Shown here piece after piece: positions 13,138-51,830 of a DNA stretch of 64,000 bases. The stretch comes from Octopus sinensis (lineage: Eukaryota). Numbering within the stretch: position 1 is the first letter of the stretch; each line of letters starts with the position of its first letter. The stretch is from NCBI RefSeq assembly GCF_006345805.1, contig NC_043000.1, positions 10,540,001 to 10,604,000 on the forward strand, written 5' to 3'. The translations under genes and the position numbers were made by a program. A model generated the notes under the pieces. The model was given only the letters and a program-made list of their open reading frames with translations. It searched no databases and was not told where the DNA came from.

Positions 13138-13759
13138 GGATCTTTTCGGTTTGAACGGCAGATTTTTTTAATAATTTCCATGTAATTAAAAATTTTTAAA
13201 TTATTATACTGGTAGAATGTGTTCATAAAACATCTTTTTCCCTTGGCTTTTTTGAGAAAATTCAGTGGTTTGTAAGATATTTGTAAGATATTTTCTTCAA
13301 TTTCTGCAAGTTCAACCAATCAATGACGTCTATTGAGCTGAAACGATTTCTGCCGTAGAGTGTAAACAACATTTTCTGGCAGTGTCATATGAAAATGTCA
13401 CCCATAATTATGACCCTAGTGTCGATCTGTTGCATTTCAATCCGTTTTAGTGTTAGGGTTAGAGTTAGGGTTAGTAGGGGTAGTTAGGGGTGGGGGAAGG
13501 GTATGTTTTTTTCATGACACCGCCAGAAAATGTTTATGGCAGAGAATGTTTTCACTTCAATAGACGTCAATGATTGGTTGAAATTGCCGAAATTGAAGAA
13601 AATATCTTACCAATAACTTACAAACTACATAATTTTCTCAATAAAGCCAAGAGAAAAAGATGTTTTATAAACACATTCTACCAGTATACGAAGTTTAAAA
13701 GTGTTTAAAAGTTACATGGAAATTATTTTTAAAATCTGCCGTTCAAACTGAAAAGATCC
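13138..13759 (+). mobile_element. Foldback MITE with GGATC...GATCC termini and central TTAGGG tract (full-length type)
   Basis: TIR GGATCTTTTCGGTTTGAACGGCAG, long inverted arms, 8-bp TSD TTTCTTTC (13130-13137 and 13760-13767). Confidence 0.9.
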
Positions 13760-14339
13760 TTTCTTTCTGTTAATAAATGTGATACCTGTGAATTGCCTAA
13801 AATATATTTGTGAATCTTTTTGCTTTCTTTACTATGCTTTATATAAAGGTTGTGGAGGCGTTGTATGTAATTTCTATTGTTTTTATCTTCTGTGCATGAT
13901 GTTTATGTTGAGTGTGACTGATGCTCTATGGTGCTGCTAGTAAGAAGGAAGACAGTAGATTAATGGGTGCTGCGGAGCCAATTATCTTGCTGATTTAAGT
14001 AAGGTTGAAGTAGTGCAGCAGTGTTTGTAGAAAGGTGTGGGCGAGAGGACAGATTCGTTTACCCGATTCGAAAAATTGCATGTTCTAGAAGTGTTGTTCT
14101 TGTACAGGTTTAGAGGCATGAGTAGTAATTGTTTGTTAATGTTTTGTAATGTTTCTTAAGATGATGTTATGTACTTTTTGTTTGAATGGATAACAAGAAA
14201 TAAAGTCAAAATCTTTACTGATGTCGATAATAGTTAGAATAGCAGGTTTGAGAGGGCTTTTTTTTTTTCTTTTTCTTGTTGAAATCTTTGTGTATTCCTT
14301 GTTAGGCTTGTGAGTAGTGTGACGGTAGAGACTAGTTGT

Positions 14340-14556
14340 CTGAATTCATATTGGTTTCAATTTCGAGCGCAAGTGCGTGAGAGGAAGTAAGTCGATTACA
14401 TCGACCCCAGTTCTCAACTGGTACTTATTTTATTGATCCCAAAAAAATGAAGGGCAAAGTCGAAATCGGCTGAATTTGAACTCAGAATGTAAAGACGGAT
14501 GAAATGCCGCCAAGCATTTTGCCTGCCGTCCTAAGGATTCTGCCAGGTCGCTGCCT
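14340..14556 (-). mobile_element. SINE family 2
   Basis: Reverse complement of the family-2 head and body. Confidence 0.75.
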
Positions 14557-14653
14557 TAGTTTAAATTCATATTGAGATCTGGAGAAAAGGGTATGAGGAT
14601 TAGTAATGTTAAAGATTAACCTTTCTAGGATTTTTTAGGGTGTGCATGAAAGG

Positions 14654-14817
14654 CACTAGTGTAGCTAGGAGGGAGTAAGGGCGGTCCGCTGCCAGCGGCA
14701 CTTTTAATGGGGCGGTTCTTTTGGATCTGCTGTAGGCAATATGTGTTTTTTGGGGGGTTCCGGAGGCGGCAATCGGAAGGGCCGCCCCGGGCGGCACACA
14801 CTCTAGCTACGCTAGTG
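14654..14817. mobile_element. GC-rich hAT-like MITE (164 bp)
   Basis: 15-bp TIR CACTAGTGTAGCTAG / CTAGCTACGCTAGTG (one mismatch). Imperfect 8-bp flanks ATGAAAGG/ATTGAAGG. Confidence 0.6.
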
Positions 14818-15499
14818 ATTGAAGGATGATGGTCTGTATGTGTTACTTCATCTGGCTTTTGTTAGATTTTAGAATTGTTATAATAGTGTCCAGTTCCAAA
14901 ATTCTAGGAATTTGACCATGTTGTTACAAGTAGTTTCTGGATATTGATGAGTGATTCCTTCAAGCCCAATGTTTCCGGTAGTTTTTGAGGGGTTTGTCTG
15001 GCCTTGAGGCATAACTGTCCATATCTCTTCTAATTTATACTGTAATATCTTTATTCTTAACTTAATGCGGACGTGAATAACTGACAAGTTCAATAAATTC
15101 TGTGTCAGAAGAATTATGAAACTAACGGTTCAGGCCCTAGTTTTTCACCTGAAAGTCGCAAGAGAGAAGGTGCTGCTATTGCTTTGGCAGAAGGATAAAA
15201 ATGAAGATGGGATTCGAAATTGATGTGGCGAATGAGGAGGTCAGATCGCAAGAGAGGTGGTACAAGAGGGTTAGAAATCTAAGGTACAAGGTTGAAGAAA
15301 GTGAGAAAGCTAAAATTAAAGCAGGATATTGAAAGTGTCAAAGCCTCTGAAACGACAGAAGTAAGAGGTGGCATTTAAGACAAGAGGATACGGGAATTAC
15401 ACACCCTGAAAACTATTTTTAAATATTTTTTAAAAAAACATTCATATAACATTTTATTTACAAAGGAGAATGATCTGGAAAGTGAGGAGAAACGCAAGA

Positions 15500-16860
15500 A
15501 AGACAAGGTATCAGAGTGGTGCGAGAGGAACAGATTGGGCTCAGTAACTCTGACAGTTTCACGGATCTCAACCAGTGTCCATCCTACTAGACGTCTGTCC
15601 CGAAATAATTCATGATCTTGGATCTATTTACCAATTGGTGGAGCAATGATCTTAACCGTTTCGATTTTCTGGAGCATTTAAGACGCCTTTACGTCTCTCG
15701 GACGGAACCTGTGCACTCCGCTGCTTCCGATACAGATATGCTTTAGTAGTCAAACTGGTCCACAAGGATAATGGTATGATAGCCTGACCTCTACAAAAAC
15801 GAAGCAATTCGGTGGCTCCTCACGCCCGTATTCGAATGGAAATTGCTCTCCGATCACACAGATTTCAACCAACAGCACGTTCCCCATCATATGCCTACTC
15901 ATCACCTCCTCTACTTTCCCTCCCACAGCCACCAGTTTCACCCATAGTACATTACTCCACTGGCTATTTCTCCAAAACCCAAACACCAATTTTCATTGTG
16001 GCAACATCGTCTCCGAATGTAGCTGTCTCGACTAGCTGCCCTCTAACTTGGATGCAGCCTTTCCATCATACATCCATGACATCAACTACACCCGTCATCT
16101 CTTCAACTCCTTTTTTTCTCTTTAACTCCTCCTAGCTCCTTTTCACTAAAGATATTAAGGCCCTCTTTCTGTAGAGGGACTGGATCGATCTCAGCGCTAC
16201 GCGGTTATTATATTTAAGATTGCATCGATGTCACCTCCTTTACCCATGAACAGCTCAACGTCATCGCTTTCGTCAACTCTTTCTATCCTGACCTGCGTAT
16301 CACAAACACCATTTCTCTAACTTTATTCACTTTTTGAACAACTCTGTTTCTATTGATTACCCCAGTCTCCAAACCTTCGTCTTTCACAAATATATCGACT
16401 CTCACATTTACTTCAACTTCAACTCACCCTACTCAATTCACACCAAATCTGGAATCGCTTTCATTTCCACCTCCTTCGCTGCCTTTGTAGCCGAAACTCC
16501 GTCTTTGATACTCAATCGAACCTTGTAGTCCACTACTACTTTACGCAAAGTGGTTACTCCCAAGTTGCTGCGCTACTAAGCACTCTTCCACCCTGTTGCA
16601 TCACATTCGCTCCACTTTCTCTTTCCCTTACACACCATCCGACCACCTTATCTCTCCAGCACACCCTCGTACGAAAATTTCGTTTTGTCTACTATGGTCC
16701 TGTTACTTCTCCCTCCTTTTTTCAAATATCATCGTAATCTGCGCAACCTTCTAGTTTTTAGATCCTTTATCCCTTACCACACTAATCCTGGATCCTTTCT
16801 CGCTGCCGTTCTCGCAGCAAACCCTGTCTTTTAATCTAGAGCACAGCCACGCTACATGGA
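15500..16860 (+). pseudogene. Decayed Penelope-like retroelement RT region
   Basis: Frameshifted peptides FVNSFYPDLRIT, FLNNSVSI..LQTFVFHKYIDSHIYFNFNSPYSIHTK and RNLRNLLV match PLE RT motifs (NSFHPxLKFT, KPTDSHxYL..S.HP.HTK, NLRxxLV). Confidence 0.7.
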
Positions 16861-17659
16861 CTTAACTTATTCTTCCAACCAATTTATCTCTACCATCAAA
16901 ATCATTATTTATACAAGTAACATATGGTGTATTCAGTCATGAGAAAGCAGATACAATGCGTGCATCAATAGCTCAAAGTTTTAGAGTACTTCGCTAGAAA
17001 AAAAAACAAAAAACATCGGAGTCGTAAAATGTAATATTAGCAAAAACATTACAATAGGAAAAGATGCTTGTATTTCAATAATCATTTGATTTGATAATCG
17101 AAGAGCTCTGTAGAAAGTAAGTTGTTGGGAACTGAAGTGGTACCTGGCTCTTTCAGAGCCAGTTCTAGTGGTGAATATTTTGTTAAGTTCAGGACGTGCA
17201 TTCACTAGGAAACACTTCTATGGATGATGATACCTAATATTTGTAGCAAACTTGAAGGTGTTAGTTTTGTTCATGTTTAGAAGGCTAAATCTCACTCAAA
17301 TCACACCCTACCGTCTTAAAAAAAAAAGGCATAATATAACTGAGTGTAAAGACTGAATGGTCGTAGTTAGAAGGTATTTATTCATAGCTGAACTAGGATT
17401 TAAACAAAATACTCTATCATAAAATTGTCTAAACCAGCAGTTCTCAACCGGGCTCCCAGGGTCGCATACGGTCTTCAAGCAGCCTTTTGGAAGCCCTCGA
17501 CAGTCTTCCCTCTATAAATATAATTTTTTCTTTAAATGACTTGTGTTTTACTTGTATTCCCTTCTGACTTTGTGCCCTCTCTTCGAAAAATTATTGGGAC
17601 TGTGCCTGCGCCTGTCGCAAAACGGATCATTAGTCAATCTACACTTCAATCACAGGCGC

Positions 17660-17774
17660 AAGCGTGACTATGTAGTAAGAAGTTTGTTTTTAAACCATAT
17701 GGTTCGGGGTATAGCCTCGAGCTGACAAAAATCTTGTGAGTAGATTTGGTAGATGGAAATTGTAAGAAGCTCGT

Positions 17775-17843
<69 letters not shown>

Positions 17844-18020
17844 ACCACTTGCTAACCTGTGTAGGTTTGTTTACGCCCAAGTAATTCGGCGGTTCGGCGA
17901 AAGAAGTCGATAGTATAGGTACCAGGCTTAATAGCAAGTAATGGGATCGATTCGTTTGACTAAAACCCTTCAAGGTGGTATCCCATCATGGTCGTAGACC
18001 AATAGCTGAAGCAAGTAAAA
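17660..18020 (+). mobile_element. SINE family 1 (diverged) with internal (GT)n(GA)n
   Basis: Head tgtagtaagaagtttg...ggttc, body and tail recognisable. Confidence 0.7.
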
Positions 18021-18330
18021 GGCAGAAGGTACCACAAGACAAACTACACACCTGTCACAAAAATCATTTTACTGACCGTTAAGTCTATATACAGTCCCGT
18101 AATACCACGCAGATCTACCGTTATTCTTTCTACCCAACCGCCACACCAAGCCAAAATTTGTCTATCCATCCACACACCTGTCATAACATCATGAAAGTGC
18201 TGTAGCACGAACTGCTAGAAACTGCAGCTAAATGTCCCTTAAATTACATCATCCAATCTTTAACAAAAAAAAATGGAAAACAGAAAAGGTATAACGGACA
18301 CATTGGATTATGTGGTCCTAAATAAATTCA

Positions 18331-18381
<51 letters not shown>

Positions 18382-18399
18382 CGATCGATCGATTTAAAC

Positions 18400-19312
18400 C
18401 TATTTCAGTTACTGGACAGGGAGCATGATGGAACACTACTTTGAAGTGTTTGTTTAATCGATTGAATTGATTTCAGAACTTATGTAAAGTCTGGTACTTA
18501 TTCCATCGTTCTCTTTTGCCGAACTGCAAAGTTACTAGATACAAACAAAGCAACACTGGTCCTCAATCGGTGTAAGATAACTACACCCCACCCCAAATAT
18601 ACATGCATGTATGTGAATATATATAAATGTGTATGTATATGTATGTAGATGCATGTACGTATGCATGCATGTATATGTGTGCATATATAAAATATACATA
18701 TAAATATATATATACATATATAAAATATACGTAATATATAAATGAGGATAAATACACATATATAAGTATACATAAATACCCACAAACATACGCACGCGCA
18801 CGCACATATTCTTTTATTCTTTTACTTGTTTCAGTCATTAGACTACAGCCATGCTGGGGCACCACTTTGAAGAATGTTAGTCAAATAAATCGACTCCAGT
18901 ACTTGTTATTTTTCAAGTCTGGTACTTATTCTATCGATCTTTTTAGCCAAACCGCTAAGTTACGGGGGGTATAAACACCCCACCTCTGGTTGTTAAGCGG
19001 TGGTGAGATACAAACACAGACACAAAGACACACATAGGCATACGCATATACATATACACACACGACGGGCTTCTTTCAGTTTCAGTCTACCGTAGCCACA
19101 GACAAGGCTTTGGTCGGCCCGGAGCTATAAGAGAAGATACTTGCCCAAGGTGCCACGCAGTGGGACTGAATTCTACTAAATTCACTCTCACAAGGAATTG
19201 TTCGTCCTGAGGCTGTAGAAAATACATTTGCCCAAGGTGCTACATAGTGGAACTGAACCTGAAACCACGTGGTTGCGAAGCGAACTTCTTGACTACATAG
19301 CCATACCCGCGC
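18400..19312 (-). mobile_element. Cluster of SINE family 1 pieces (3' part, near-full copy, extra 5' part) with (TATG)-rich spacer
   Basis: Two tails (18400-18590, 18800-19040) and two heads (19060-19170, 19180-19312). Confidence 0.75.
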
Positions 19313-19380
19313 CCATTGTATCGCAAAAGAAAATTGGAATGGTCACAGCAAGAATTCAGTTGTAGATCTTTAGATCTACA

Positions 19381-19835
19381 GGATCTTTTCGGTTTGAACG
19401 ACAGTTTTTTCTAGCGGTGTCATATGAAATTGTCACCCATAATTATGACCCTAGTATCGATCTATTGCATTTCAATCTGTTTTATGGTTAGAGTTAGTTA
19501 GGGTTAGTTAAGGTTAGTTAGGGTTAGGGTTAGGGGTGGAGCGAAGTGTATCTTTTTTCTTCATAAATGAAAATAAACCCAATCTGTTTCTTAAACGAGA
19601 AACATATTCATACGGCACAGAATGTTTTCACCTCAATAGACGTCATTGATTGGTTGAAGTTGCAGAAATTGAAGAAGAAAAAACAACAAATATCTTACAA
19701 ACTATAGAATTTTCTCAATAAAGCCAAGAGAAAAAGATGTTTTATAAACACATTCTACCAGTATACGAAGTTTAAAAGTGCTTAGTTACGTGGAAATTAT
19801 TTTTTTTAAACTGCCGTTCAAAACCGAAAATATCC
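19381..19835 (+). mobile_element. TTAGGG-carrying MITE, short type
   Basis: GGATCTTTTCGG...AAAATATCC. TSD GATCTACA/GATCTGCA (7 of 8). Confidence 0.85.
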
Positions 19836-20855
19836 GATCTGCACACCTCTAGCAACAACATACTACTAACGACCAACTGACTAGCTTTCTCTTCAACACT
19901 TATGTCAGTAAGCAACATATCACAACATATATATAGATTCCATCACAACAAAGAAACATTTATCAACTTAAAGCAGACGATACTTCTCTGAACTTCAAAT
20001 CATTGCTGAAATAATTTTAAAATAGCATGAAAATAACATTCTTAAACAAAAAAAAAAAAAACATAGAAATAAACTAATTTGTTTTTGTGAAAATGTTCTA
20101 ATCAAAATATTGTTGGAGAAAAAATATTTATACTTACTTTATAAGAGTCAGTAACAAGTAAAATATTGTCAGTGACACCATCTATGCATGCTGCCATTTT
20201 GAGTGAATCTGGTCAGTGAACGTTTGCGCATGTGCACACAGAATCGTCTGCTTTTCAGGGAAAGTTTATCTACGGATGTAAATCCGAACCATAATACGTA
20301 TTGTTTTTAGGGCCAGTAGCTTTTTTTTTTTTGTTTTTTTTTTTCTATGAAAAGAAATACTAACCATAACTCGACTTGACTGAACTCGTTCAAGCGTGAA
20401 GGTTGGGAAAGACATGATCGGTTGGCAAGTGGCCAGCATCTGCTTAACTAGGGAAATGAACAATTGACATTCATTATTGATGGAAACCTGTCTTGTTGTG
20501 TAGAAAAGTTATATTTAGAAACAATGATCATACTAACACTTTCAAATAAATCTGTTTAAAGGATGTATAAAGTAATATTAAAAAGAAATTAGTTTTGCTC
20601 CATAAGCGACAATATTGATATCTTTATTAATTATTTTCAGCATTTTTTTTATTTCTTTTATTATTTTTACCATAGAGAGATGTTGTTGCTAATGTTGTTG
20701 TTGTTGTTGCTTTATTAGCTCCAAATCAGTTTTGACTTAACACACGTAATATTTAAATATCTTTGGCGTTTTTTTGTTTTTGTTTTTTTGTTTTTTTGTC
20801 ACTTAGAAACAACATCCTTATTTCAAAGTAATTTCCGAGTAAAAAGGGAAATTTA

Positions 20856-21265
20856 GGATCTTTTCGGTTTGAACGGCAGTTTTTAACATAATTTCTAGGT
20901 AACTAAAAAATTTTAAACTTCGTATACAGGTAGAATGTGTTTATAAAACAGCTTTTTCTCTTGGCTTTATTGAGAAAATTCTATAGTTTGTAAGATATTT
21001 GGTCTTTAATTTCTTGCATTTCGGCAATTTCAACCAATCAATGACCGTCTATTCTGTGCGGTATGAATATGTCCCTCATTTAAGAAACAGAGTTGTTTAT
21101 TTACATTTGTGAAGAAAAAAAGATACCCTCCCCCACCTCTAACCCTAACCAACCCTAACCCTAAAATAGATTGAAATGCAATAGATCGATACTAGGGTTA
21201 TAATTATGGGTGACAATTTCATATGATACCGCTAGAAAAAACTGCCGTTCAAACCGAAAAGATCC
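20856..21265 (-). mobile_element. TTAGGG-carrying MITE, short type (CCCTAA on plus strand)
   Basis: TIRs intact. 8-bp TSD GAAATTTA (20848-20855 and 21266-21273). Confidence 0.9.
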
Positions 21266-21699
21266 GAAATTTAATCCAATCACGGAAGATTCAAATGTAA
21301 TGAGAGAAAATGGTAATTTGATCTTACAATATTATGTAGTCACTTTAAATGCCACCTATTATCTTAATAACCTATATAATATATTGGTCAGTCTCTTCAT
21401 TTACTTCTGTGGATTGTTAGTACTTGATATTTATTAGTGTAGGAATGATTGTGATGGAAATATATTTTTTGTTGATGTTTTAAGCTCCGTGTACATAGAA
21501 AGATTATCATTTTTATTTTGTACCATTTCATTTGTGATTGCGCGGGGTTTATTTTGCTTTGACTGGTTGAAAGTGAAAATTATTACTTTTTTCTCAATGA
21601 ATTAAAACTTTACTCAAACGTATATTGTTCAGGACATTTTGGAAATGAATTATACATCTTAGGCCAGTTGCTTTCTATTAGCTGGCGGTACGTAAAAAG

Positions 21700-22400
21700 A
21701 AAAGAATAAAGAGAATTATTAAAAAATAGCATGAAAGAGAATCATTATATATTCATTTGTTGCTGTTTCTCACATTCATATTTTATTACACCTATCAGAG
21801 AGTTGAAACTCCAGCAAGACTTAAGATTTGAACACCATTCTCTAAGTTACATGAGTGAACCACATATGTTTCAGGTACACATTCTATTTATTGACCATTC
21901 AATTTGCAGGAGATCAAGCCACACAGAACAAAACTGAATGCTCTGTGCTTTTCTCTTGTGATAAGCAGAGTCCGCGAAGATCTGGCGGACAGTGTGTTGA
22001 GGGCAGTCAAATAACACATGTCTCACTTCTTGCCATAAGCAAGCCAGAAATATGAGTAGATTCGGATTAACTCACATCATGATTTTCATTCAAGACCAGT
22101 TCGTTCCTATTTCTAGAGTAAGCTCTTAATGATTGATGAATTTAGACACTGTGAAAGTTGATCCTTATACCCTAGGTCTTTCTGCAATGATTGTCTGAAA
22201 ATCCACATTCATCTATGTACATACTTTCCTTCAATAAATATATTATAAAATTTCACGAATTTTCTTCTTGTTTACAACACACACAGCCAACCTAATCCAT
22301 AGTAATCTTACATTGAAGACCATTGCAACAATAAAGACCAATTCACCTATGCGACAATGATGACCCAACGCAACAAGCTATCTTAATAAAATACCAATCA
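21700..22400 (-). pseudogene. Probable LINE ORF2 C-terminal (zinc-knuckle) remnant
   Basis: Minus frame WQEVRHVLFDCPQH resembles the ExxxHxLxxCP motif. Extent uncertain. Confidence 0.4.
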
Positions 22401-22464
22401 TCGCGACAAAACTATTATGCTTTATTAGTTATTAGTTTACATTTTTATTTTATTTTTTTATGCG

Positions 22465-22756
22465 CCCTTTTTCAAGCCGAGCCAGGTTCATGGGCCCGGT
22501 TTCTATGGCGTATGTGTTCCCCCAGCTGGACGGGACGCCAGTCTATCGCAGCGTTACTCAAGAAACAGGAAGAAAGAGAGAAAGAAAGTTGGGGCGAAAG
22601 AGTACAACAGGGGTCGCCACCACCCCCTGCCGGAGCCTCGTGGAACTTTAGGTGTTTTCGCTCAATAAACACACACAACGCCTGGTCTGAGAATCGAAAC
22701 CACGATCCTCCGACCGCAAGTCCGCTGCCCTAAGCACTGGGCCACTGCGCCTCCAC
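22465..22756 (-). mobile_element. SINE family 4 (tRNA-derived)
   Basis: Minus head GTGGAGGCGCAGTGGCCCAGTG...GGTTTCGATTC. Homologous to 33095-33406. Confidence 0.8.
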
Positions 22757-22879
22757 AGTTTATATTTTACCGTGTATGTAATAACTTTTCCGTAATATAA
22801 GTTTTTACAAAAGAAAGACAAAGAAAAGAGAAAAAGGCAGGAAAAAGAAAAGGAGGAAAGGAAAAAGGAGAAGAAAGAG

Positions 22880-23870
22880 AAAAGAAAACATCAATGTAGT
22901 ACCAAGTGCTTCAATTGGTGCAACATTGCTAAGGTGTTGGAAAAGTTAAGCGCCCTCGCAGGCATCACCTGACACCTCGGTGAGGCGAACCGAGCTGCCA
23001 ACGATGATAAGAACTCCGCGGTTAGTGGCCCAGTCCCTCTAAACGTTTCAAACGCCACAGGTTGAAAGATTTAGTTCACTATCAGGTCCCGATACTTCAG
23101 GGTTTTGTTCCGTTCAGCTACAGAAGCAGTAACCCTCCCATTTACTGCAGTATCCAGGTTGTGGAAGGGAGCAAAAGAGTCACAGACTGTGGTGTCCCAG
23201 ATGAAGCACTTACTTCTATCCCGAAGACAGAGGGTAAGACCATCTGGTCTCTTCTCATCACTTCTGGATAATTCTGCCGGCTCCAGCTAGGGCCCGCTTA
23301 ATGATTGAGTTTATCTCTGTGTGACGAGCAAAACGACCATCACTTAGGCGGCAAGACAGGCTGTGAAGACCCGTGGGATCGAAGAGCCTATCACAACGAC
23401 ATCTCAGTCCCCTACAGACATCAGCTCCCATTCTGAGTGCGATGGGGATACGGAGCTCATCAAGGCTGAGTAGACCTCCAATGTTGGTCACAGACAGAGC
23501 ATCAATCCAGCCCCATCCCATCCCCAAAGATTTTGCACAAGCTGAAAGTAGGCGACACCTCAAAAATTGATCAAATTGATCAAGGAGGGAAGTTAAAAGT
23601 GGCGCCTGAACGCAGATTGTCCCATACTCACTACTTCCGTTTATCCTCAACTGTAACAGGAACTGACGAACCCTGCTCTCTCCACTGTAACAGAGCTTTA
23701 TCTATCTCCCTGTTGCAATTAGTAAATGTTGGAGAGGAGAGGATGTTGCTTACTAAAGAGAAGGAAGAGTGGATGGAGGACAGAAAACAGGGAAGAGATA
23801 AAGACGAGCACTTACGCAGAACTAGACCCCCAAACCGTTGGGGCAAAGCAGCCTGAATGTCAGTTTGGGG
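22880..23870 (-). pseudogene. CRE-clade (restriction-like endonuclease) non-LTR retrotransposon 3' fragment
   Basis: LPQRFGGLVLR; LSLDELRIPIALRMGADVCRGLRCRCDRLFDPTGLHSLSC..GRFARH (CCHC); DEKRPDGLTL..IWDTTVCD; IFQPVAFET. These are RLE-type motifs characteristic of CRE elements. Frameshifted. Confidence 0.8.
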
Positions 23871-23959
23871 TCAAATGTGAGACCTAGGTTTTATTGTTGT
23901 TATTGTAGATATTAGATATTTGCATTCTCCTGTCATTGTAAGCTCTTTGTTTTCACGAC

Positions 23960-33587: not shown

Positions 33588-34266
33588 GGATCTCTACCTT
33601 TTGACCTACAGATTTAAAAAATAATTTTTTGTAACTAAATACTTTCAAACTTCAGACACTGGTAGAATGTGTCATATAAAACATGTTTTACTCTTAGCAT
33701 TTTTGAGAAAAATTTATATTTAGGAAGTTATTTCATGTTAAAGTTCTCGTATTTCAGTAATTTCAACCAATCAATGACGTGTATTCAGCTGAATAAAATC
33801 ACTGCCATTGTTTATCAACAACAACTATCAGCAGTGTATTTTTCGTTTCTCACTGTTATTTATGACATTGTTTGTGCATTTGTACCGGTTTTAAGGTTTT
33901 AGAGTTAGGGTTTTAGGGTTAGGATGTTAGGGTTAGGGTTTTAGGGTTAGGGCTAAGGTTAGGATTTTAGGGTTAAGCTTAAGGTTTTAGGGTTGTCATA
34001 AATAACAGTGACAAATGAAATATACACTGCCGGAAGTTCTTGTTGACAGCAGTAATTTTATTCAGCTGAATACATGTCATTGATTGGTTGAAATTACTGA
34101 AATACGGGAACTTTCACATGAAATAACTTCATAAATATAAGTTTTTCTCAAAAATGCTAAGAGTAAAACATGTTTTATATGACACATTCTACCAGTGTCC
34201 GAAGTTTAAAAGTGCTTAGTTACAAAAAATTATTTTTTAAATCTGTCGGTCAAAAGGTAAAGATCC
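33588..34266 (+). mobile_element. TTAGGG-carrying foldback MITE, divergent subfamily (679 bp)
   Basis: Termini GGATCTCTACC.../...GGTAAAGATCC, long inverted arms, ~100-bp TTAGGG/TTTTAGGG spacer. 8-bp TSD GAATTTTG. Confidence 0.9.
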
Positions 34267-40149: not shown

Positions 40150-40252
40150 CCTTTCAATGATCACCAGTTTGACCAAGATCAAGCCATGGCTACAAGAATC
40201 ATGTTCTCTATCATGCAGCAATAGTTTTCTTGATGTTTAAAATTTTTGCAAA

Positions 40253-40644: not shown

Positions 40645-40779
40645 TGTAATAATACAGCCATTTATAATAGCAAAAGCTTCAACTGTATCTTGTATCAGAA
40701 TACTGTCTTGACTGCCAGTCTATACGCTTCGTATTTTTCAAATCTCTTGAATTAAAAGTTTCCAGTTACTCTTCCACTG

Positions 40780-41230: not shown

Positions 41231-41286
41231 TTTACTCCTTTAAATTAGCTGTATATCCCTTCACTTATGTCAGGTGGATTCTTTAA

Positions 41287-41728: not shown

Positions 41729-42574
41729 TTTATCTCTTCTCTCTTCTCTTATCAAATTACCAGACCCTGTAGTAACATAGATAGGGGTGGGCACAAGGAG
41801 CTGACCACTCCAGGTGGTGCTTTTATGGGGCAACACTTTTGGTTCTGCTTTATAAGCTTGTATAGACTGCATTAACCTGGAGGGCAGTGAGGAGAGTAAA
41901 CTCAATGGTTGTCCCAGGTGGCACAATCTTTAGCTGTGCCACTGGTCTTAATATTTACTCTGAAGTAAAAACAAAAGTCATTCTTCCACAGAACAGCATC
42001 AGTCTGGAAATCCACACACAGTGACCTTTGATTTCTTAAGGATGGTGAAATTGGACATCAACTACATAAATGTTCTCCATAGAAGAAGATCTGCAAAGGT
42101 CAGAGGTAACTCTCTATCCACCTCTTTTCACCAACTTATAAATATATGAAAAAAATGGTTGCAGCTCTTTCCCACTCCAGCTATTCTTGATATGTCACAG
42201 GGTGAAAGGCTAGAAAAGTTGAAAGGATACTTATGTCTTCTTGAAACTGCATAGGCACCCAAAACAATTAAGAAAAGTATGGCACATATTAGTAAGTCAT
42301 TTGTGGTTGATAGTAAGCTCTTTTATACTTGTATTATGTGTATGCAAACATAGAATGACACCAGCTGGAGCATTTTGTCTCAGAGCAACTTCTCAAAAAG
42401 ACTTGTGTGTTAAAAACAGAGCTTCACTTAGAATGCCCCAGTAGACTACCAGACACAGTGTTTCAACATGATTTGGCCTCCTCAGTAATGAATACTTTAA
42501 ATGTTCTAAGTCAAACCAAAATGGCTTGTGATATAAAAATCAGTGACCAAAACCTTTATAGCTTTGTGCAAATG

Positions 42575-42990
42575 ATAGCCAGCCCAGGATGGCTAAGAAA
42601 CTTATTTTTTAACCATATGGTTTTTGGGTTCACTCCCACCACACAGCACCCTGAGCATGTGTTTTCTACTATAGCCCTGGGCTGACAATAGCCTTGTGAG
42701 TGGATTTTGTAGATAAAAACTGAAAGACAACAGTTGTGTGTGTGTGTGTGTATGTGTGTGTGCATGCGCATGTGTGCATGTATGTGTGTGTGTGTGTGTC
42801 TTTTGTCTTGACATTGTATGATATTTGTAAATGAACATCACTGTAATGCAAGCAATGCCTTTCATTTCCTTCCAGCCAGGTAAATATGTTTGACCATAGG
42901 GAAATATTACCTTGCTTGAAAATAGATGCATGTAGATGACATGAAGGGCATCAAACCACAGAAAATTTGCCTCAACAAATTCTATCTGAC
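42575..42990 (+). mobile_element. SINE with family-1 head and a different tail
   Basis: Family-1 head and body to (GT)n, then a tail unlike 58570-59005. Confidence 0.6.
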
Positions 42991-43169
42991 CATGCAAGCA
43001 TGAAAAAGAGAAGATTATAACATTGATGATGATATATATTGTATAGAGGAGTTTATTGAGAGTTTACTCCTGATAACAGAGGTTCATCCTGTGCTAAAGT
43101 AGAGTATGAAGTATGTGTTAAGTGTATCATTTGATACAGCATATAGTGATGCACTGGCATTGAATGAGA

Positions 43170-43578
43170 AAAATCTTTTCTAGCAGTGTCATATGAAATT
43201 GTCACCCATAATTATGACCCTAGTATCGATCTATTGCATTTCAATCTGTTTTAGTGTTAGGGTTAGGGTTAGGGTTAGGGGTGGGGGGAAGGGTATCTTT
43301 TTTTCTTCAGAAATATAAATAAACCTAATCTGTTTCTTAAACGAGGGACATATTCATACGGCACAGTATGTTTTCACCTCAATAGACGTCATTGATTGGT
43401 TGAAATTGCAGAAATGCAAGAAAATAAAACAACAAATATCTTACAAAATATAGAATTTTCTCAATAAAGCCAAGAGAAAAAGATGTTTTATAAACACATT
43501 CTACCAGTATACAAAGTTTAAAAGTGTTTAGTTACGTGGAAATTATTTTAAAAACTGCCGTTCAAACCGAAAAGATCC
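43170..43578 (+). mobile_element. TTAGGG-carrying MITE with damaged left end
   Basis: Right TIR intact, clean (TTAGGG)3 plus G-run. Left TIR partly deleted, no TSD. Confidence 0.85.
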
Positions 43579-43985
43579 TAAGTTGAATGCAGTCTATTGG
43601 GTGTGTAATTTTTATTCTATATGAAATACAGAGAACATTTAAGCTTGTAGAGTAGGTAGACTGACTGTTCTCATATGGAAATGTATTGAGAATGGATGAC
43701 AAAAAAGGGTGAAAAAAAACAAAGGCTTTATTCTGTCATGTAAGACATAAGAAAAAGTTTTAAGGTCAACTTAAAAAATTACAGAAAAAATATCACAAGA
43801 CTGAGCTGAGTGTTGACATGACACACTTTCAGATAATAAATGATTCATAAAATGATGATTATGTTGATGATGATAAATATGATAGTCATAACGATAGTGG
43901 TCATAATGAACATGTATGTATATACCCTTATGTACATATACATGTGAGCATGTATATATGTTTCCCTCTCTCACTCTCTGGTGTG

Positions 43986-44016
<31 letters not shown>

Positions 44017-44047
44017 TTATATATAAATATATATATGTATAAATATA

Positions 44048-44158
<111 letters not shown>

Positions 44159-44256
44159 GAAATTTACATAAATAAGGATAAGATCGTTATTTAAAATACC
44201 GATCTTATCAGGTGGTCAGCATCAGAATAAAATCCTCATAGGTAATAATTATTAAA

Positions 44257-44538
44257 ATTATAATTATGGGTATCTAAAAGAATCTACCATGCTAGATATA
44301 GCAGCCAAAACTTGACTCTAAAACCTCATTAAATGTTCATACCACACCAAGAGAGAAGACAAAGAGACAAAATAAACTAGCAAAAAACATTTAGTGGATA
44401 ATTCCAGATCTGGAATTATCCAGTTAACTTTTTTTTTGCTAGTTTATTTTGTCTCTTTGTCTTTAATGAGGTTTTAGAGTCAAGTTTTGGCTGTTATATC
44501 TAGTATGGTGGTATCTCTTATATACCCTTAATTATAAT
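44257..44538. repeat. ~280-bp palindrome with zero-spacer centre, between (AT)n tracts
   Basis: Centre GGATAATTCCAGA|TCTGGAATTATCC (44396-44421). Arms pair outward, with one ~25-nt indel. Confidence 0.9.
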
Positions 44539-44548
44539 ATATATATAT

Positions 44549-44599
<51 letters not shown>

Positions 44600-44606
<7 letters not shown>

Positions 44607-45600
44607 CATCATCATCGTCGTTTAACATCGTCGTTTTCCATGTGGCATGGGTTGGACGGTTTGACTGATGTCTGGAGAGCTAGGGGCTGCACCAGGCTCC
44701 AATCTGATCTGACAATGTTTCTACAGCTGGATGCTTTTCCTAACGCCACCCACTCCAAGAGTGTAGTGGGTGCTTTATATGTGCCACCGGCATGGGAGCC
44801 AGTCAGGCAGGCCTGGCATTGATCACGTCTGGATGGTGCTTTTTACATGCCACTGGCACAAGAGCCAGTCAGGCTGTACTGGCATCGGCCATAATTGGTT
44901 GGTGATTTTTACATGCCACCAGTATGGCAGCCAGTCAGGGGTCACTGGCCACAGCTACAATATTAGTTTTACTTGACTCAACAGGTCTTCTCAAGCATAT
45001 CATATCACTTGACACATCAGGGGTATTCTTAACAGGGCCAGACATGTGTAGCTGCGATCTCACTTTAGTTGCCGGGTCTTCTCAATCACAACATATCTCC
45101 AAAGGTCCCAGTCTCTTATCATTGCCTCTGAGAAGCCTAATGTTCGAAGGTGATGCTTCATCACCTCATCCCATGTCTTCTTGGTTTACCTCTTCCACAG
45201 GCTTCTTCTACAGTTAGGGAGTGGCACTTCCTCACACAGCTGTCTTCATTCATACACAACACATGACTATACTAGTGCAGACGCCTCTCTTGCACACCAC
45301 ATTTGATGCTTCATATGTCCGACTTTCCTCTCAGGGTTTTTACACTCTGTCGTGTATGCACACTGACTTTACACATCCAGCGGATAATACTGGCTTCATT
45401 TCTTTCAAGCCTACGCATGTCCTCAGTATTCATGGCTCATGTTTCACTGCTGTGTAGCATGGCAGTTTGCACACATGCATCATACAGTCTACTTTTCACC
45501 CTGAGCAAGAGGCCCTTAGTTGCCAGCAGAGGTAGGAGCTCCCTGAACTTTGCCCAGACTATTCTTACTCTAGTCGCTACCTCTGAGAGCCTAGATAGCA
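44600..45600 (-). mobile_element. RTE-clade LINE 3' fragment (ORF2 end plus long 3' UTR and (GAT)n)
   Basis: Minus frame VATRVRIVWAKFRELLPLLATKGLLLRVKSRLYDACVQTAMLHSSET*..RLERNEASIIRWMC. Its UTR is the repeat seen at 32040, 36305, 38265, 62515 and 63140. Confidence 0.85.
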
Positions 45601-45734
45601 GAAACTATCAACTACAATAGTTTCTCCTCCTTGCATGTGATGGAATCTATTTTCTGCACATCTTCAGTGTTTATTGCCCCAGTACATCTGCCACACACAC
45701 AAAAACTATTTTCCCAGTTAACCTTCCTTTGATA

Positions 45735-45950
45735 TTGCTGTGCCTTTTATGTGTCCATATATATATATCTATATATATACTATATATGTGGGAATTTCTG
45801 TCTGTGGGTGTGTTTGCGGAGTTGTTATCTAATTCCTCCTCCATCGTTTTATCGATTTTGATGAAACTTGACACGTGAGTAGAACTCATGTCTGGAAACG
45901 TCATGGCATACTCAGATTGTTGAAAATATTGATAATAGGGCCCCTGGAAG
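45735..45950 (+). mobile_element. DINE-1/Helentron-like core fragment
   Basis: TC/TA-rich start, gtctgt block and cgattttgatgaaacttg motif. Family assignment is inference. Confidence 0.4.
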
Positions 45951-45987
45951 TGATCCTTGTATATATCTAATATATTTTATTTTAATA

Positions 45988-47368
45988 TCTATATATATAA
46001 AAGTGAAGTTGTGTGAATGTCTGTCTCCTACGATTTAGATTCCTAAATACTCCCACATTTTGTGGTGCAGTTTAACCAAATTCGGGTATCTTATAGTCGT
46101 GATTCATATCGAGCCCGTCTGGGTATTAGCGCGCATCTACGATGAGTCTACGATTTTAAAAATAATTTACCATAATCTTTTTCCATTTTAATGCATATTT
46201 TTTCGTGTGTCGATGGCGGCGGAGTTGGCGTCCATGCTCACACCTGCACCTGTGTTGCTTCTCCCCCTTCTTCCCTCCCTTGTAAAGTGTGACTGCGCAT
46301 GTGCGAACGTGTGACTGCGCATGCGCAGTCACACTGTCGTGCATGCGCAGTCACACTGTCGTGCATGCGCAGTCACATGTTCGCACATGCGCAGTCACAC
46401 TTTCGCGCATGCGCAGTCACATGTTCGCGCACGCACATATATGTGCGCATATAGCATAAGACCATATATATATCTATATATATAAAAGTGAAGTTGTGTG
46501 AGTGTCTGTCTCCTACGATTTAGATTCCTAACTACTCCCACATTTTGCGGTGCAGTTTAACCAATTTCAGGTATCTTATAGTCGTGATTCATATCGAGCC
46601 CGTCTGGGTATTAGCGCGTGTCTACGATTTTAAAAATAATTTACCATAATTTTTTTCCATTTTAACGCATATTTTTTCGTGTGTCGATGGCGGCGGAGTT
46701 GGCGTCCATGCTCACACCTGCACCTGTGTTGCTTCTCCCCCTTCTTTACTCCCTCGTGAAGCTGTGGGGAAGGAAGTGTAAGGAAATCAACGTCGTAAAG
46801 CGTTGTCAAGGAGACCAGCGTTCTTTTAGAACAACGACTTCATGGCTTGAAGTCGCCAAAACAGAAATCGCTAAAAAAGCTGAAACAGATCCACAAAAAC
46901 GGCAAAAACCGCCACACAGGGCAGGTTTCCTGTGCAAACAATTTGCACAACCGAATGTTTTAGTTGTTGCACAAATCTTTATATATAAAAGTGAAGTTGT
47001 GTGTCTGTCTCCTACGATTTAGATTCCTAACTACTCCCACATTTTGCGGTGCAGTTTAACCAAAACCGGGTATCTTATAGTCGTGATTCATATCAAGCCC
47101 TTCTGGGTACTAGTGCGCGTCTACAATGAGTCTACGATTTAAAAAATAATTTACCATCATTTTTTCCATTTTAATGCATTTTTTTGCTATTATATAAGGG
47201 AAGTAACTCTCTAAAAATGTCTACGATGAGTCAACGATTTAAAAAAAATTTACTATAATTTTTTTCCATTTTAATGCATTTTTTTGCTATTTTTTGGCTG
47301 TAACTCTCTAAAAATGTTTTATAGTTATTTCCCTTACAAACCCGAGCAACGCCGGGCGATACTGCTAG
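45988..47368 (+). mobile_element. Head-to-tail array of three Helitron-like family A units
   Basis: 5' TC starts at 45988, 46473 and 46976. A single 3' hairpin plus CTAG|T at 47341-47369. Confidence 0.85.
46286..46450. repeat. 22-bp minisatellite containing GCATGCGCAGTCAC, with an orientation switch
   Basis: Two inverted units then five forward units. Perfect 26-bp palindrome at 46309-46334. Confidence 0.9.
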
Positions 47369-47619
47369 TATTTTATATATCTAATATATTTTATTTTAAA
47401 AACCAAGGGAAATTCGTCCCTTGATGGGATCATTGTATATAGCCAAGGGAAATAACCCATTCGTTTTCCTAAATTATTTGGTAAAAATGAAAATGAGTAT
47501 GCTTAGTTCTTAGTATTTGAACTGTTAGAGTTATTTTCGCAATTTATCCAGTACAACCCTTAAACAAGTAAATAGTATTTTCCTAAACAATAGATCCACT
47601 TATTTCGGTTAGTGACTTA

Positions 47620-47900
47620 TTCATGAATATACCAACACTAGCGCCTCTGAGGGTAATATTCTCTGGGAATGCACAAAAGCCCTTTTCATAATATCACTAT
47701 CAGACATATAATTCTTACATAACTCTATTAAGTGATCACATCTATTAAATGATGAGTGGCAACAAATAAACATTGCTAAATTTGCTTCAAGCATAGATGT
47801 CTTATCATTTTGGGCTTTAATAAAATTGGCAAGAGGAATCATTTGCTGTGTAGTTGATACCTTATGTTTCTTTGCTTCACAGTGGCTTCTTTCGGAATTT
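47620..47900 (-). pseudogene. hAT-related transposase N-terminal fragment
   Basis: HCEAKKHK and LEANLAMFICCHSSFNRCDHLIELCKNYMSDS resemble the E..L..F...H.S....DH...L.....DS block of hAT-type transposases. Confidence 0.5.
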
Positions 47901-47963
47901 TTGCTAGTACAACTTATTTTTTTTTTGCTCATTATAATGTAGTGGGAAGCAAGAAAATAAATT

Positions 47964-48358
47964 GGTGGCGAGCCGGGTAAAATGCTTAGTGGTATTTCTT
48001 CTGCCATCACGTTCTGAGTTCAAATTCCACCGAGGTCTACTTCGCCTTTCATCCTTTCGGGGTCAATAAATTAAGTACCAGTTACACACTGAGGTCGATG
48101 TAATCGACTTAATACCTATGTCTGTCCTTGTTTGTCCCCTCTATGTTTAGCCCCTTGTGGGTAATAAAGAAATAGGTATTTCGTCTGCCGTTACGTTTTG
48201 AGTTCAAATTCCGCCGAGGTCTACTTTGACTTTCATCCTTTCGGTGTCAATAAATTAAATACCAGTTACGTACTGGGGTCAATGTAATCGACTTAATCCC
48301 TTTGTCTGTCCTTGTTTGTCCCCTCTATGTTTAGCCCCTTGTGGGCAATAAAGAAATA
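47964..48358 (+). mobile_element. SINE family 2, dimeric (head-body-body)
   Basis: Second body starts at the junction aaagaaata|ggtatttc (48174/48175). Confidence 0.9.
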
Positions 48359-51300
48359 AGAAAATAAATTGAATGATTAATAAAAATATAAAATTGAAAA
48401 CACAGCTTATCAGTTTGCCGCAAATAATTCTTTCATTTGCTGTCAACAATTCTTATGTTTGCTACAAACAAATTCTTAAGGTGAAGAATACTGATTCAGA
48501 GATGCAGGGTGGCCAACTTATAAATGGAAAAGTAAAATCTGCAGAAATCCTAAAACTGTGTTCAGATATAAACCTGGGAACATCACATTTCGCTTCCAAT
48601 CTTACATTTAATATCTATTGCTAAAACCACAAATACAACTACAATATTTGAAGAAAAAAAAAGTAAGTAGAACTATAAAGGGGAGACCCCCGCCATCCCC
48701 GTAGTTCTACACAAGATATTTAATCCAAATGGAAAAACACAGGTCTGTTTTAAAAGAGTCAAACTGAAAGTAAATCAGTCAACCTGTCACGATAAAAACT
48801 CATCTCTACAGAATAAAGCATTGTTAGGACGAATTTCCATGCTTTCATTCTTTGCAACAAATTTACGTTATTGTGTAGTGAGTTCAGGTGCTGACATGAG
48901 TTATCTTTTCCCCCTCCTCCCATCAGCACGGCTCTGTATCTAAGCGGCAGGAGTGGGGATGGAAAAGTTCATAACTTGATAAACTTTATTTTGATAAACT
49001 TCCATTTGAAGTTTCATGAAAGTGAAAGAAAAATTCAACAATAGCTGATAGTGCTAAAATTTGGATGTAAGATACTTTGACGAAAGGGGAAAAGGAGGAA
49101 AAAGAAAAAAAAAATGGTAACTATTGTGGAAATAGCATGATCAGAGAAAAATGCTAAAAAAAAAATGCTGAATAAAATTTTAAACCTGCTATTTCCCCTG
49201 CTAAATGCTAGATTCAAAAATTTTCTGCTAAATGCTGAAAAAAATGCAAGATCTAGCATAAAATATGCTAAATTGGCAAACCCTATAAGTTATCTCCCCT
49301 GGTGATGTAACCTCTCGCAGTTTAATGATGGGACCAAACGATGTTGTAATAAACTACCAAGCGACTTGATGAAACAAATGACTAAACTTCAAATAATTCC
49401 TCTTGTTAGTAAGTATTCGACTTTTCAGTTACTTTAATTGTCTTCTGTTAGTATCTCAGCAATACCATGGAATTAATTTTGCCCATTATAACAACGCATT
49501 CTCTGCTACTAACACATATGCTTCTCTACACTTTCTATCATCGTGTCGCGTTAATAACCTTAATATTATTTATAAGCCTTGTTTGCTGTTTACTGTCGGC
49601 AAATCACCCTAATTCTTAATATAGTACAGTAACCTAGGTTTTGTCAGGTAATTCCTTTTTATCACTTCATTCCCACTTAGCATCTCCAATTCAATTACAT
49701 ATCTTTATTCTTATTCGACGGTAGACTACCTCATTCGGGACACTTCACTTAATCTTCTAATACAAAAATTACAGACTCTGTTATCTAAATATAGTTTTTT
49801 TAAATAAAAACACCCATAAATATATTCCTTCGTTGTTTCAATGTTTCTGCTAAGATCGAAACATTCTCTCTCTATATTTTCTGTAGATTATACGTAATTG
49901 CAACGTTTGTATGTTGCCTGTCTTTCGAGACAGTATTTTACTAAAATATTCAATGAAGACATCTTGTTAAAAGATTCCTTAACTAGTAATGATTATAAGA
50001 AAAGATATATATTTGTTTAATTGTTATTTAAAACATACATAAATCTTACTTAAAACTCAAACGTACCTAACCTGTCGCAACACGAATCGAGACAAGCATT
50101 AAAATAACTTCGTAGAAAATGAAATTTTGGGAATAATTAAAAGTTTGAAATTTGTTTTTTTGTATATTATTGTGATGATATCGATAATTCAGTATCTCAA
50201 ATTCTATTTTTCCGTTATTTGTTTCATGACAATAAGACTTTCTTTGCTGTCCGTGTTATGTGAGAGATATAGTGTTCTAGCAGATAAATTTATTTCGAAA
50301 ATATATCCTCTTTAGGTTACGTTTTTTGTTTTGACATTTAATCTCTGAAGCATGGATTTTATAAATCACCTCCCACTTGTTTAATACGCTTTTTTCTTTT
50401 ACTTTTTTCTTCTAATGGTCTTAGTATACAAATATATTGAGCATCGGCTTTTCAAAGTCTTAAAATTAAAATAAAAAAACCTTATTTAAAAAAAAAACAC
50501 AGCATAAAAAACCATAATAAGGAATCTCAACCTAATGCTTTATAAATTACATAAAGGGCACGGTTAATTTTTTTATATGTGTGCGGATTTTAAAAGTATT
50601 AAAAAACATTGATAAATCTCAATTTAGTGTTTTTTCTAATCGTATTTATATATTAATTATAGGGATAATGAACGCTGGCATTGATAATCTTTGAGTATAG
50701 CGTGCCACTTTCACTTTCTCAAACTTTTAGTTAGCATCAGTTTGGCGGTCACGGAAGATTTCTATTTTTTAAACTGTACTGCAGCCAGTTTGTTTGTCAT
50801 AGGGGATATTTTAGGTGCAATTCTGATGCATCGGAGTGTCTAGAATTGTTGTTGTTGTAAACGAGAGGGTATTATGATAGGAAGATTTGGCAGCTATTTC
50901 TAGCAAAGAGAAGCATTTCAATTAACATTATTGTTACTTTTTCAAACACAAGAATAAATAAGACTTTAATTTGATTTAATTCAAACTGGTACTTTCCTTC
51001 TAGTTTCGGAAACTTTGGTTTTATCCTTCAGTTTCGAAAGATAATAATGATTTCAGCAATGAATATCTTAAACAGTTGAAGGAATTTGGGAGCCAATGAT
51101 CAACTTCCGTGATATTATGGAACAGCTGTAATAGAACATATTGTTGATGAATAGCAATTTTTATTTTCCACTAGGTTCATATTTATCCTTACATTATCTC
51201 CATAAAAATTCTTGCAAGTAACTATTGAAAAGTTCTTCAGATGCACCATTCATTTACTTCACTTTTATGTCATACCATAAAACTAAAACGATTTGGTAGT

Positions 51301-51426
51301 TTGTGTATGTGTCTGGCAGTTAGCAGAACTGATGGAATTCTTACTGTGGTTCACAATACATTGACCAAATTCCAATAGCAATTCTCATCATGGCTTGTCT
51401 GCTGAAATGAAAACATAAGGAGACTG

Positions 51427-51830
51427 GGATCTTTTCGGTTTGAACGGCAGTTTTTTCGAACGGTGTCATATGAAATTGTCACCCATAATTATGACCCTAG
51501 TATCGATCTAGGTACGCATTTCAATCTGTTTTAGGGTTAGGGGTGGGGGGAAAGGTATCTTTTTTTTCTTCACAAATGTAAATAAACCCAATCTGTTTCT
51601 TAAACGAGGGACATATTCATACGGCACAGAATGTTTTTTACCTCAATAGACGTCAGTGATTGGTTGAAATTGCAGAAAAAAAAACAACAGTGTTACAAAC
51701 TATAGAATTTTCTCAATAAAGCCAAGAGAAAAAGATGTTTTATAAACACATTCTACCAGTATACGAAGTTTAAAAGTGTTTAGTTACCTAGAAATTATGT
51801 TAAAAACTGCCGTTCAAACCGAAAAGATCC
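51427..51830 (+). mobile_element. TTAGGG-carrying MITE, short type
   Basis: TIRs intact. 8-bp TSD GGAGACTG (51419-51426 and 51831-51838). Confidence 0.9.

Follow-up and report, generated by a model that had tools for sequence, protein, structure and literature searches.

The window analysed here, 64,000 nucleotides of Octopus sinensis (contig NC_043000.1, positions 10,540,001 to 10,604,000), contains one family of non-coding repeats bounded by terminal inverted repeats (TIRs). Six copies, designated c1 to c6, were found by direct site reading and by BLAST of c1 and c4, and together they make up 4.7% of the 64-kb window. The family is a non-autonomous miniature inverted-repeat transposable element (MITE) with GG...CC termini and 8-bp target site duplications (TSDs), and every copy carries a central tract of TTAGGG-type repeats. 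TTAGGG is the experimentally determined telomere motif of octopods (Adachi 2014, as cited in PMC6160780 and PMC13218726). The limits of the copies were set by site reading, BLAST of c1 and c4 against the window, and multiple alignment, and are given below in window coordinates.

13138..13759, + strand: c1, 622 bp, full-length foldback of subfamily A; TSD TTTCTTTC on both sides, exact.
19381..19835, + strand: c2, 455 bp, short form missing the left arm; TSD GATCTACA/GATCTGCA, 7 of 8 positions alike.
20856..21265, - strand: c3, 410 bp, short form in inverted orientation; TSD GAAATTTA on both sides, exact.
33588..34266, + strand: c4, 679 bp, full foldback of the divergent subfamily B with TIR GGATCTCTACCTTTTGACCTACAG; TSD GAATTTTG on both sides, exact.
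About 43168..43578, + strand: c5, short form; left TIR lost and no TSD, right TIR intact.
51427..51830, + strand: c6, 404 bp, short form; TSD GGAGACTG on both sides, exact.

The 24-nt terminus GGATCTTTTCGGTTTGAACGGCAG, allowing at most one mismatch, is matched eight times in the window, always at an element end, and was not matched in 100 shuffles. Both ends of c4 carry the diverged terminus given above, which has two matches against none expected. The TSD is exact in c1, c3, c4 and c6, agrees at 7 of 8 positions in c2, and is absent at c5; the chance of a single exact 8-bp flank match is about 1.5e-5. Apart from the TSDs the flanks of the copies are unrelated to one another, and no paralogous empty sites were found when the joined flanks of each copy were compared. 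An earlier note on this DNA had described a MITE family dispersing TTAGGG-type tracts, with six copies ending in GGATC...GATCC and distinct 8-bp TSDs at five of them. The TIRs, the TSDs and the confinement of the repeat to the copies bear out the family, and the five TSDs stand. The count of six also holds, with both ends present in five copies; c5 starts near 43168 without the left GGATC.

The copies have the size and ends of MITEs, being 404-679 bp long (below about 800 bp) with 24-nt TIRs. Their TSD has a fixed length of 8 bp (c1, c2 at 7/8, c3, c4, c6 and m15, a copy from Octopus bimaculoides described below), and they lack coding capacity, the longest stop-free stretch being 78 aa. A protein search with a 60-aa open frame from an arm of c1 gave no homologue, and an Rfam scan of the copies matched no family. 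Copies c2 and c3 (19381-21265) lie about 1 kb apart in opposite orientation and form a large inverted repeat around roughly 1 kb of unique DNA; their closeness may reflect local hopping.

The TTAGGG dimer TTAGGGTTAGGG, with at most one mismatch, occurs 16 times in the window against 0.33 expected, and all 16 matches fall within the six copies. There are three canonical G-quadruplex (G4) motifs in the 64 kb, one each in c1, c4 and c5, and none outside the copies. The family is the sole source of interstitial telomeric sequence (ITS) and of canonical G4 motifs within the window, and it is on this scale that the earlier suggestion of a major source of such sequence holds. The tracts are as follows.

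13448..13501, + strand: c1 tract, degenerate TTAGGG over 39 nt, then the G-run GGGGTGGGGGAAGGG; located in the loop of the hairpin, with a canonical G4 motif.
19483..19546, + strand: c2 tract, 50 nt including the 10-mer variant GTTAGGGTTA; degenerate G-run.
21126..21163, - strand: c3 tract, 25 nt plus a G-run.
33892..33993, + strand: c4 tract, 102 nt of degenerate TTAGGG/TTTTAGGG with a 14-mer higher-order unit; no G-run.
43252..43293, + strand: c5 tract, 26 nt, the purest, with five units by Tandem Repeats Finder (TRF); G-run and canonical G4 motif.
51532..51555, + strand: c6 tract, 8 nt or about 1.5 units; G-run.

The orientation of the tract relative to the element is constant in every copy. 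Its length varies more than 10-fold, from 8 nt in c6 through 25-50 nt in c1, c2, c3 and c5 to 102 nt in c4, close to the range of about two units to about 100 bp that had been read earlier. As had also been noted, a G-run (GGGGTGGGGGGAAGGG) usually follows: it lies directly 3' of the tract in five of the six copies, c4 being the one without it. In subfamily A about 75 nt of conserved, unique sequence (...GTCACCCATAATTATGACCCTAGTATCGATCTATTGCATTTCAATCTGTTTTAG) lie 5' of the tract, and GGGGTGGGGGGAAGGGTATC and then a T-run lie 3' of it. Judged from this arrangement, each insertion would deposit a telomere-like, G-quadruplex-prone tract inside the chromosome.

Three structural forms are seen in the multiple alignment of the copies. 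By BLAST, the arms of c1 and c4 are inverted repeats in the range of 220-280 bp, with identities of 87% and 90.7%, respectively. As single-stranded DNA, c1 is predicted to form a hairpin whose loop holds the tract (-198 kcal/mol, z = -32), and c4 one in which the tract is essentially the whole loop (-241 kcal/mol, z = -50). Long inverted arms, the mark of a foldback element, are present in c1, c4 and m15 and absent from c2, c3, c5 and c6, in which the left end has been cut down to about 30 nt. In the multiple alignment c2, c3 and c6 share one identical deletion junction, where the left terminus of about 30 nt is fused straight to the central segment; c5 is of this short form too but has lost still more of its left end. 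The short-form copies also have an additional segment of about 50 nt 3' of the T-run. The shared junction indicates that c2, c3, c5 and c6 descend from a single left-arm deletion derivative that was amplified on its own, and such amplification means that the long left arm is dispensable for mobility. The name foldback MITE, which the earlier note gave to the whole family, fits the ancestral form represented by c1 and c4 and not the majority of copies, which are asymmetric and short.

The arms of subfamily A and of c4 are 74% identical, and the central sequence is barely alignable across subfamilies (48%). Including that of m15, there are three subfamilies; their TIR variants differ at 7 of 24 positions, and all have GGATC...GATCC termini. 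A block reading TTCAACCAATCA(N)TGACGTC, which combines a CCAAT box with a TGACGTC motif resembling a cAMP response element (CRE), is near-invariant in every arm of all three subfamilies. Examples lie at 13313-13332, 13566-13585 and 33775-33794 of the window and at 5733-5752 and 6099-6118 of the O. bimaculoides locus L015. This CCAAT/CRE-like block may function either as a subterminal site bound by the transposase or as a promoter-like motif that the MITE disperses.

Loci outside the window were obtained by protein search with the Merlin protein KOF79200.1, Octopus bimaculoides Merlin proteins being available in the supplement of PMC8101967. These comprise L011, L013 and L014 of O. sinensis, L012 of O. 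vulgaris and L015 of O. bimaculoides, and the following features were delimited in them.

L015, 5575-6284: m15, 710 bp, a copy of a third subfamily with the exact 8-bp TSD TAACGTTG.
L015, 4505-4602: solo right end of the family, ending in ...AAAAAGATCC, about 0.5 kb 3' of a 277-aa Merlin open reading frame (ORF) at 3223-4056.
L014, 7149-7601: foldback-like element with arms unrelated to the MITE family; at its centre about 100 nt of degenerate TTAGGG repeats are followed by GGGGTGGGGG.
L011, 4266-12994, and L013, 4253-12994: octopus Merlin element of 8.7 kb in O. sinensis.
L012, about 3888-12950: the same 8.7-kb Merlin element in O. vulgaris.

The seventh copy, m15, has a third TIR variant, GGATCTTTGGGGTTTGACGGGCAAC (start GGATCTTTGGGG...), and its arms are closest to those of c4. 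Its centre consists of a 78-nt degenerate G-tract and, 14 nt further on, an inverted C-tract, so that the repeats stand head to head. The observation that the tract persists in subfamilies with different TIRs, made earlier for two of them, is extended by m15 to a third. Besides the six copies in the 64 kb, the 8-kb O. bimaculoides contig holds one copy and a fragment of one end, whereas the O. sinensis and O. vulgaris loci, a small sample of about 83 kb, hold none; the family may be lineage-restricted or locally clustered. Metagenome contigs yielded no match to the exact TIR. A conserved arm pattern gave eight matches in metagenomes, which are bare 25-nt chance matches, and none in GTDB genomes or IMG/VR. 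Two long-read contigs from ENA (L001 and L002) have only an RTE element in common with the window (74% nucleotide identity) and no MITE, and no MITE was found in three non-octopod Merlin loci from ENA (L016-L018). As literal strings, the TIR and short interspersed element (SINE) sequences had no match in the literature. A possible family end at 1857 of L015, 'GGATCTTT', was rejected as part of a different foldback element.

The left junction of the tract is homologous across the subfamilies, reading ...GCATTTCAATCTGTTTTAG in subfamily A, ...GCATTTGTACCGGTTTTAAG in c4 and ...GCGTTTGTACTGGTTTTAGC in m15 on a common pattern of GCATTT...GTTTTAG. Together with the constant orientation, this homology points to a single acquisition in the ancestor of the family. 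The tracts are 80-100% identical to perfect TTAGGG repeats overall, 92-100% in subfamily A and about 80% in c4 and m15, where the tract consists largely of the derived 14-mer TTAGGGTTTTAGGG; c2 has a derived 10-mer. Such degeneracy, the derived 10- and 14-mers and the range of lengths indicate the dynamics of a micro- or minisatellite, with slippage, unequal exchange and point mutation. Dynamics of this kind do not appear to fit a purity kept by selection or re-synthesis by telomerase. We infer that the tract is a passenger microsatellite which has persisted through successive master copies.

The structure of the MITE was compared with that of Merlin elements, whose hallmarks are TIRs of 24-462 bp, a conserved terminal 5'-GG and TSDs of 8 or 9 bp (PMC8101967). 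The MITE has GG ends, a TSD of 8 bp in all six readable cases (c1, c2, c3, c4, c6 and m15), and a TIR core of 24 nt with inverted arms of about 220-280 bp in c1 and c4. In O. bimaculoides 191 Merlin sequences have been counted, by far the most among bilaterians (PMC8101967). We delimited the 8.7-kb Merlin element as a positive control for these hallmarks in octopus. It encodes a 305-aa DDE_Tnp_IS1595 ORF and has 354-bp TIRs starting GGCGATGTTTCG/GGCATAGTTTCGG, and its three insertions are flanked by different 8-bp TSDs (GCAAATCT and CAAGGCTT, plus GAAACTTT in O. vulgaris). Two O. sinensis chromosomes carry it in copies that are 99.6% identical, and the element looks recently active. It is unusually large for a Merlin. 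Its TIRs and those of the MITE have TTTCGGTT and CAGATTT in common.

Because of the GG termini, the constant 8-bp TSD, the long TIRs and the abundance of Merlin in Octopus, a Merlin enzyme is the top candidate for mobilising the family, and Merlin membership is likely on these sequence features. The solo end in O. bimaculoides resembles m15 only over the terminal 96 nt or so, as expected of an autonomous partner, and could be the remnant of one. No left end lies upstream of the neighbouring Merlin ORF, which is flanked by the family on the 3' side alone, and no close relative of its transposase has DNA on record.

The best overall explanation, to which we give a probability of about 0.68, is an octopod MITE family mobilised by Merlin-type transposition and carrying a TTAGGG tract that was acquired once and has since been a passenger. 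The ancestor would have been a long-TIR foldback with two inverted arms of about 300 bp and GGATC...GATCC ends. A DDE transposase acting in trans, most likely a Merlin (IS1595-like) enzyme, would bind the termini, excise the element and reinsert it with a staggered 8-bp cut, giving the TSDs. The common ancestor of the subfamilies would have gained the tract once, where the palindrome has its centre and the hairpin its loop, possibly when telomerase helped to repair a break at this fragile point or by abortive gap repair. In vertebrates telomerase has inserted short ITSs during break repair, sometimes together with a 5' fragment of telomerase RNA (PMC8537989). Afterwards the tract would have evolved by slippage and point mutation as a passenger, and a left-arm deletion derivative with only about 30 nt of the left end would later have been amplified alone to give c2, c3, c5 and c6. 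With each transposition a further euchromatic site would receive a short interstitial telomeric sequence, in most cases accompanied by a G-run.

Several points weigh against this explanation. The similarity between the TIRs of the MITE and those of the 8.7-kb Merlin is not significant against shuffles (p about 0.03-0.2), and the octopus Merlin loci fetched include no transposase-encoding element with matching GGATCTTTTCGG... (GGATC...) TIRs. The solo end beside the O. bimaculoides Merlin ORF could be a chance neighbour, given the density of the MITE. The unrelated foldback-like element in L014 also has a central tract followed by GGGGTGGGGG, which, as a single case, hints that tracts were gained more than once. 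The survival of the tract across subfamilies whose arms are 74% and centres 48% identical could reflect selection, and seven copies give little power for comparing the decay of the tract with neutral decay. Of what the earlier note proposed, the fit to Merlin stands in the GG ends, the 8-bp TSDs, the TIR length and the abundance of Merlin, and falls short in the TIR likeness and in the autonomous partner with the same TIR, which it had suggested seeking and which was not found among the octopus Merlin loci.

The transposase might belong instead to another superfamily with 8-bp TSDs (hAT, P, Zisupton, Novosib or an 8-bp Mutator-like element, MULE), the GG termini being coincidental; we consider this doubtful, although it is a serious contender. 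The termini of hAT elements are of the YARNG type, those of P elements start with CA, and the TSDs of MULEs are usually 9-11 bp. Membership of hAT was rejected, as its TSD length fits but the termini are GGATC and not YARNG. The same absence of a Merlin partner and of significant TIR likeness to the verified octopus Merlin speaks for another superfamily, as do the zf-BED/hAT fragment 2 kb from c1 and the presence of hAT, Mutator and further TIR families in O. vulgaris (PMC13282606). Against it are the TSDs, all six readable ones being exactly 8 bp, and the GG termini, which are described as universal in Merlin (PMC8101967).

It is unlikely, if conceivable, that the tract has been kept by selection, with telomere-protein binding or a G-quadruplex aiding the element (in transposition, hairpin resolution or escape from silencing) or serving host chromatin or regulation. 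A role in binding telomere proteins, in transposition or in chromatin had been proposed earlier as the reason for its retention. The tract is indeed present in seven of seven copies and three subfamilies despite a central identity of about 48%, it survived the deletion that gave the short form, and the three canonical G4 motifs in the 64 kb all fall within copies. Yet it is reduced to 8 nt in c6 and is only 80% telomere-like in c4 and m15, where non-telomeric variants (TTTTAGGG, TTAGTTAGGG) dominate the repeats and poor binding of telomere proteins is to be expected. A canonical G4 motif is found in only three of the six window copies, and the G-run is absent from c4. Persistence is equally expected of a microsatellite carried in successive master copies. 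Comparison of tract conservation with arm divergence, a check which had been recommended, gave 92-100% identity of the subfamily A tracts to a perfect repeat against 90-93% pairwise identity of the flanks (right arm 90%, central unique segment 93%), a result of low power from seven copies. The proposed retention is not borne out by a tract that is degenerate, rich in derived variants and similar to its flanks in its range of identity; seven copies are too few to tell mutational persistence from weak selection.

Repeated acquisition of the tracts is a still less promising explanation, in which the foldback centre would break or be processed as a hairpin, and telomerase would add TTAGGG before the ends are rejoined. 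In a variant of this scheme the family would have been born from a head-to-head fusion of sister telomeres beside a transposon end. The position of the tract exactly at the hairpin loop agrees with such a process, as do the head-to-head tracts of m15, the similar tract in the L014 element and the telomerase-mediated insertion of ITSs at breaks documented in vertebrates (PMC8537989). The left junction and orientation common to all subfamilies argue for one event, however, and the derived 10- and 14-mers point to slippage and not to fresh synthesis by telomerase. Furthermore, the inverted C-tract of m15 can be explained by arm-to-arm conversion, and there was no match to any Rfam telomerase RNA, the published animal set containing no cephalopod. 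A general action of telomerase or telomere fusion on octopod transposon palindromes, whether by healing of broken centres or by sister-telomere fusion with the head-to-head tract of m15 as a relic, is similarly improbable; it would have supplied central tracts to this family and perhaps to other foldback families, the L014 element among them. The tracts, being 8-102 nt long, degenerate and enclosed in elements bounded by TIRs and TSDs, are neither terminal telomeres nor fusion-derived ITSs. Segmental duplication or assembly artefact has a negligible chance of accounting for the copies, since only their clustering (six in 64 kb, with c2 and c3 1 kb apart) suggests it, whereas unrelated flanks and a TSD of its own at each insertion mark the copies as transposition events and refute duplication, joined flanks match nowhere else, and m15 lies with its TSD in another assembly.

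A MITE that is mobilised by a Merlin enzyme and carries a single-origin passenger tract would have relatives among the non-autonomous Merlin elements (IS1016/IS1595-related; Feschotte 2004, as cited in PMC8101967), with which the octopus family has in common the 5'-GG, the 8-bp TSD, the TIR range and the abundance in octopus. DTC84 of Donax trunculus and the oyster 'pearl' elements (PMC3879986) and the Cg_HINE Helentron derivatives of Crassostrea gigas (PMC7492417) are likewise small and non-autonomous, and carry a variable central array or microsatellite that is dispersed by transposition. They differ in having family-specific satellite-like cores, a putative TSD of AA or Helitron-type insertion, and short inverted repeats only, while the octopus MITE has the host telomere motif as its array, an 8-bp TSD and long inverted arms. 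Drosophila FB and Tetris of D. virilis (PMC4079207) resemble it in their long arms, near-perfect hairpins and expandable internal tandem repeats. In those elements the repeats form the arms, whereas the octopus MITE has its repeat in the loop, between arms of unique sequence. Also unlike FB and Tetris, four of the six octopus copies have lost the foldback structure yet evidently transposed. Tel-1 of Tetrahymena and TBE1 of Oxytricha are ciliate transposon-like elements behind internal telomeric repeats, which stand at their termini and are tied to programmed DNA elimination. The octopus tract differs from these in being central, between the arms, and not terminal. The short ITSs and telomerase RNA-associated TERC-ITSs of vertebrates (PMC8537989) have a similar degenerate TTAGGG array (6-205 bp, compared with 8-102 nt here) and a conserved unique 5' segment, but they are single-copy insertions and not mobile. 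If the 75-nt segment 5' of the octopus tract were a fragment of octopus telomerase RNA, the family would be a mobile, amplified TERC-ITS.

Mechanistically the octopus family is an ordinary MITE; what makes it noteworthy is the telomere-repeat cargo. No MITE or Merlin-type element with a host telomere repeat has been described for cephalopods or other animals in the literature searched, although an uncurated Repbase or Dfam consensus may exist. The repeat annotation of O. vulgaris lists 2 Merlin and 65 MITE families and leaves telomere repeats unmentioned (PMC13282606), and the main review of ITSs treats transposon-borne ITSs as a possibility and not as a documented mechanism (PMC6410037). The window offers a clean sequence-level example in which one MITE family delivers every telomere-like tract and every canonical G4 motif, as well as a tractable system for how a palindromic transposon gains telomere repeats at its centre. 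If the pattern is genome-wide, telomere scans of cephalopod assemblies (--telo-motif TTAGGG, PMC13218726) would match thousands of internal MITE copies, and interstitial fluorescence in situ hybridization (FISH) signal in octopods could be a measure of MITE density. Likewise, ITS-linked fragility or the binding of TRF telomere proteins in octopus would then be of transposon origin.

Aside from the MITE family, the window contains other repeats. Octopod SINEs are found at 47991-48358, 52106-52480, 59793-60239 and many other sites, and are 88-91% identical to copies in the O. sinensis and O. vulgaris loci, which by itself marks the window as octopod DNA. Several of them are tandem dimers with periods of 184 or 230 bp, and one type has an internal AC/AT microsatellite; simple repeats inside transposable elements seem to be common in the octopus genome. 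Remnants of coding elements and two minisatellites were also recorded.

9759-10379, + strand: C-terminal ORF of an RTE-type long interspersed element (LINE), 207 aa from stop to stop, with hundreds of homologues, the best 93% identical and on short ENA contigs.
10879-11267, + strand: frameshifted zf-BED (hAT-like) transposase fragment (Pfam PF02892, E = 5e-6), upstream of c1.
61141-61446, + strand: remnant of a mariner-like transposase with an internal deletion, identified by eye on its N- and C-terminal motifs; no Pfam match.
44782-44939: minisatellite of a 66-mer repeated 2.4 times.
46317-46431: minisatellite of the GC-rich 22-mer GCGCATGCGCAGTCACACTGTC repeated 5.2 times.

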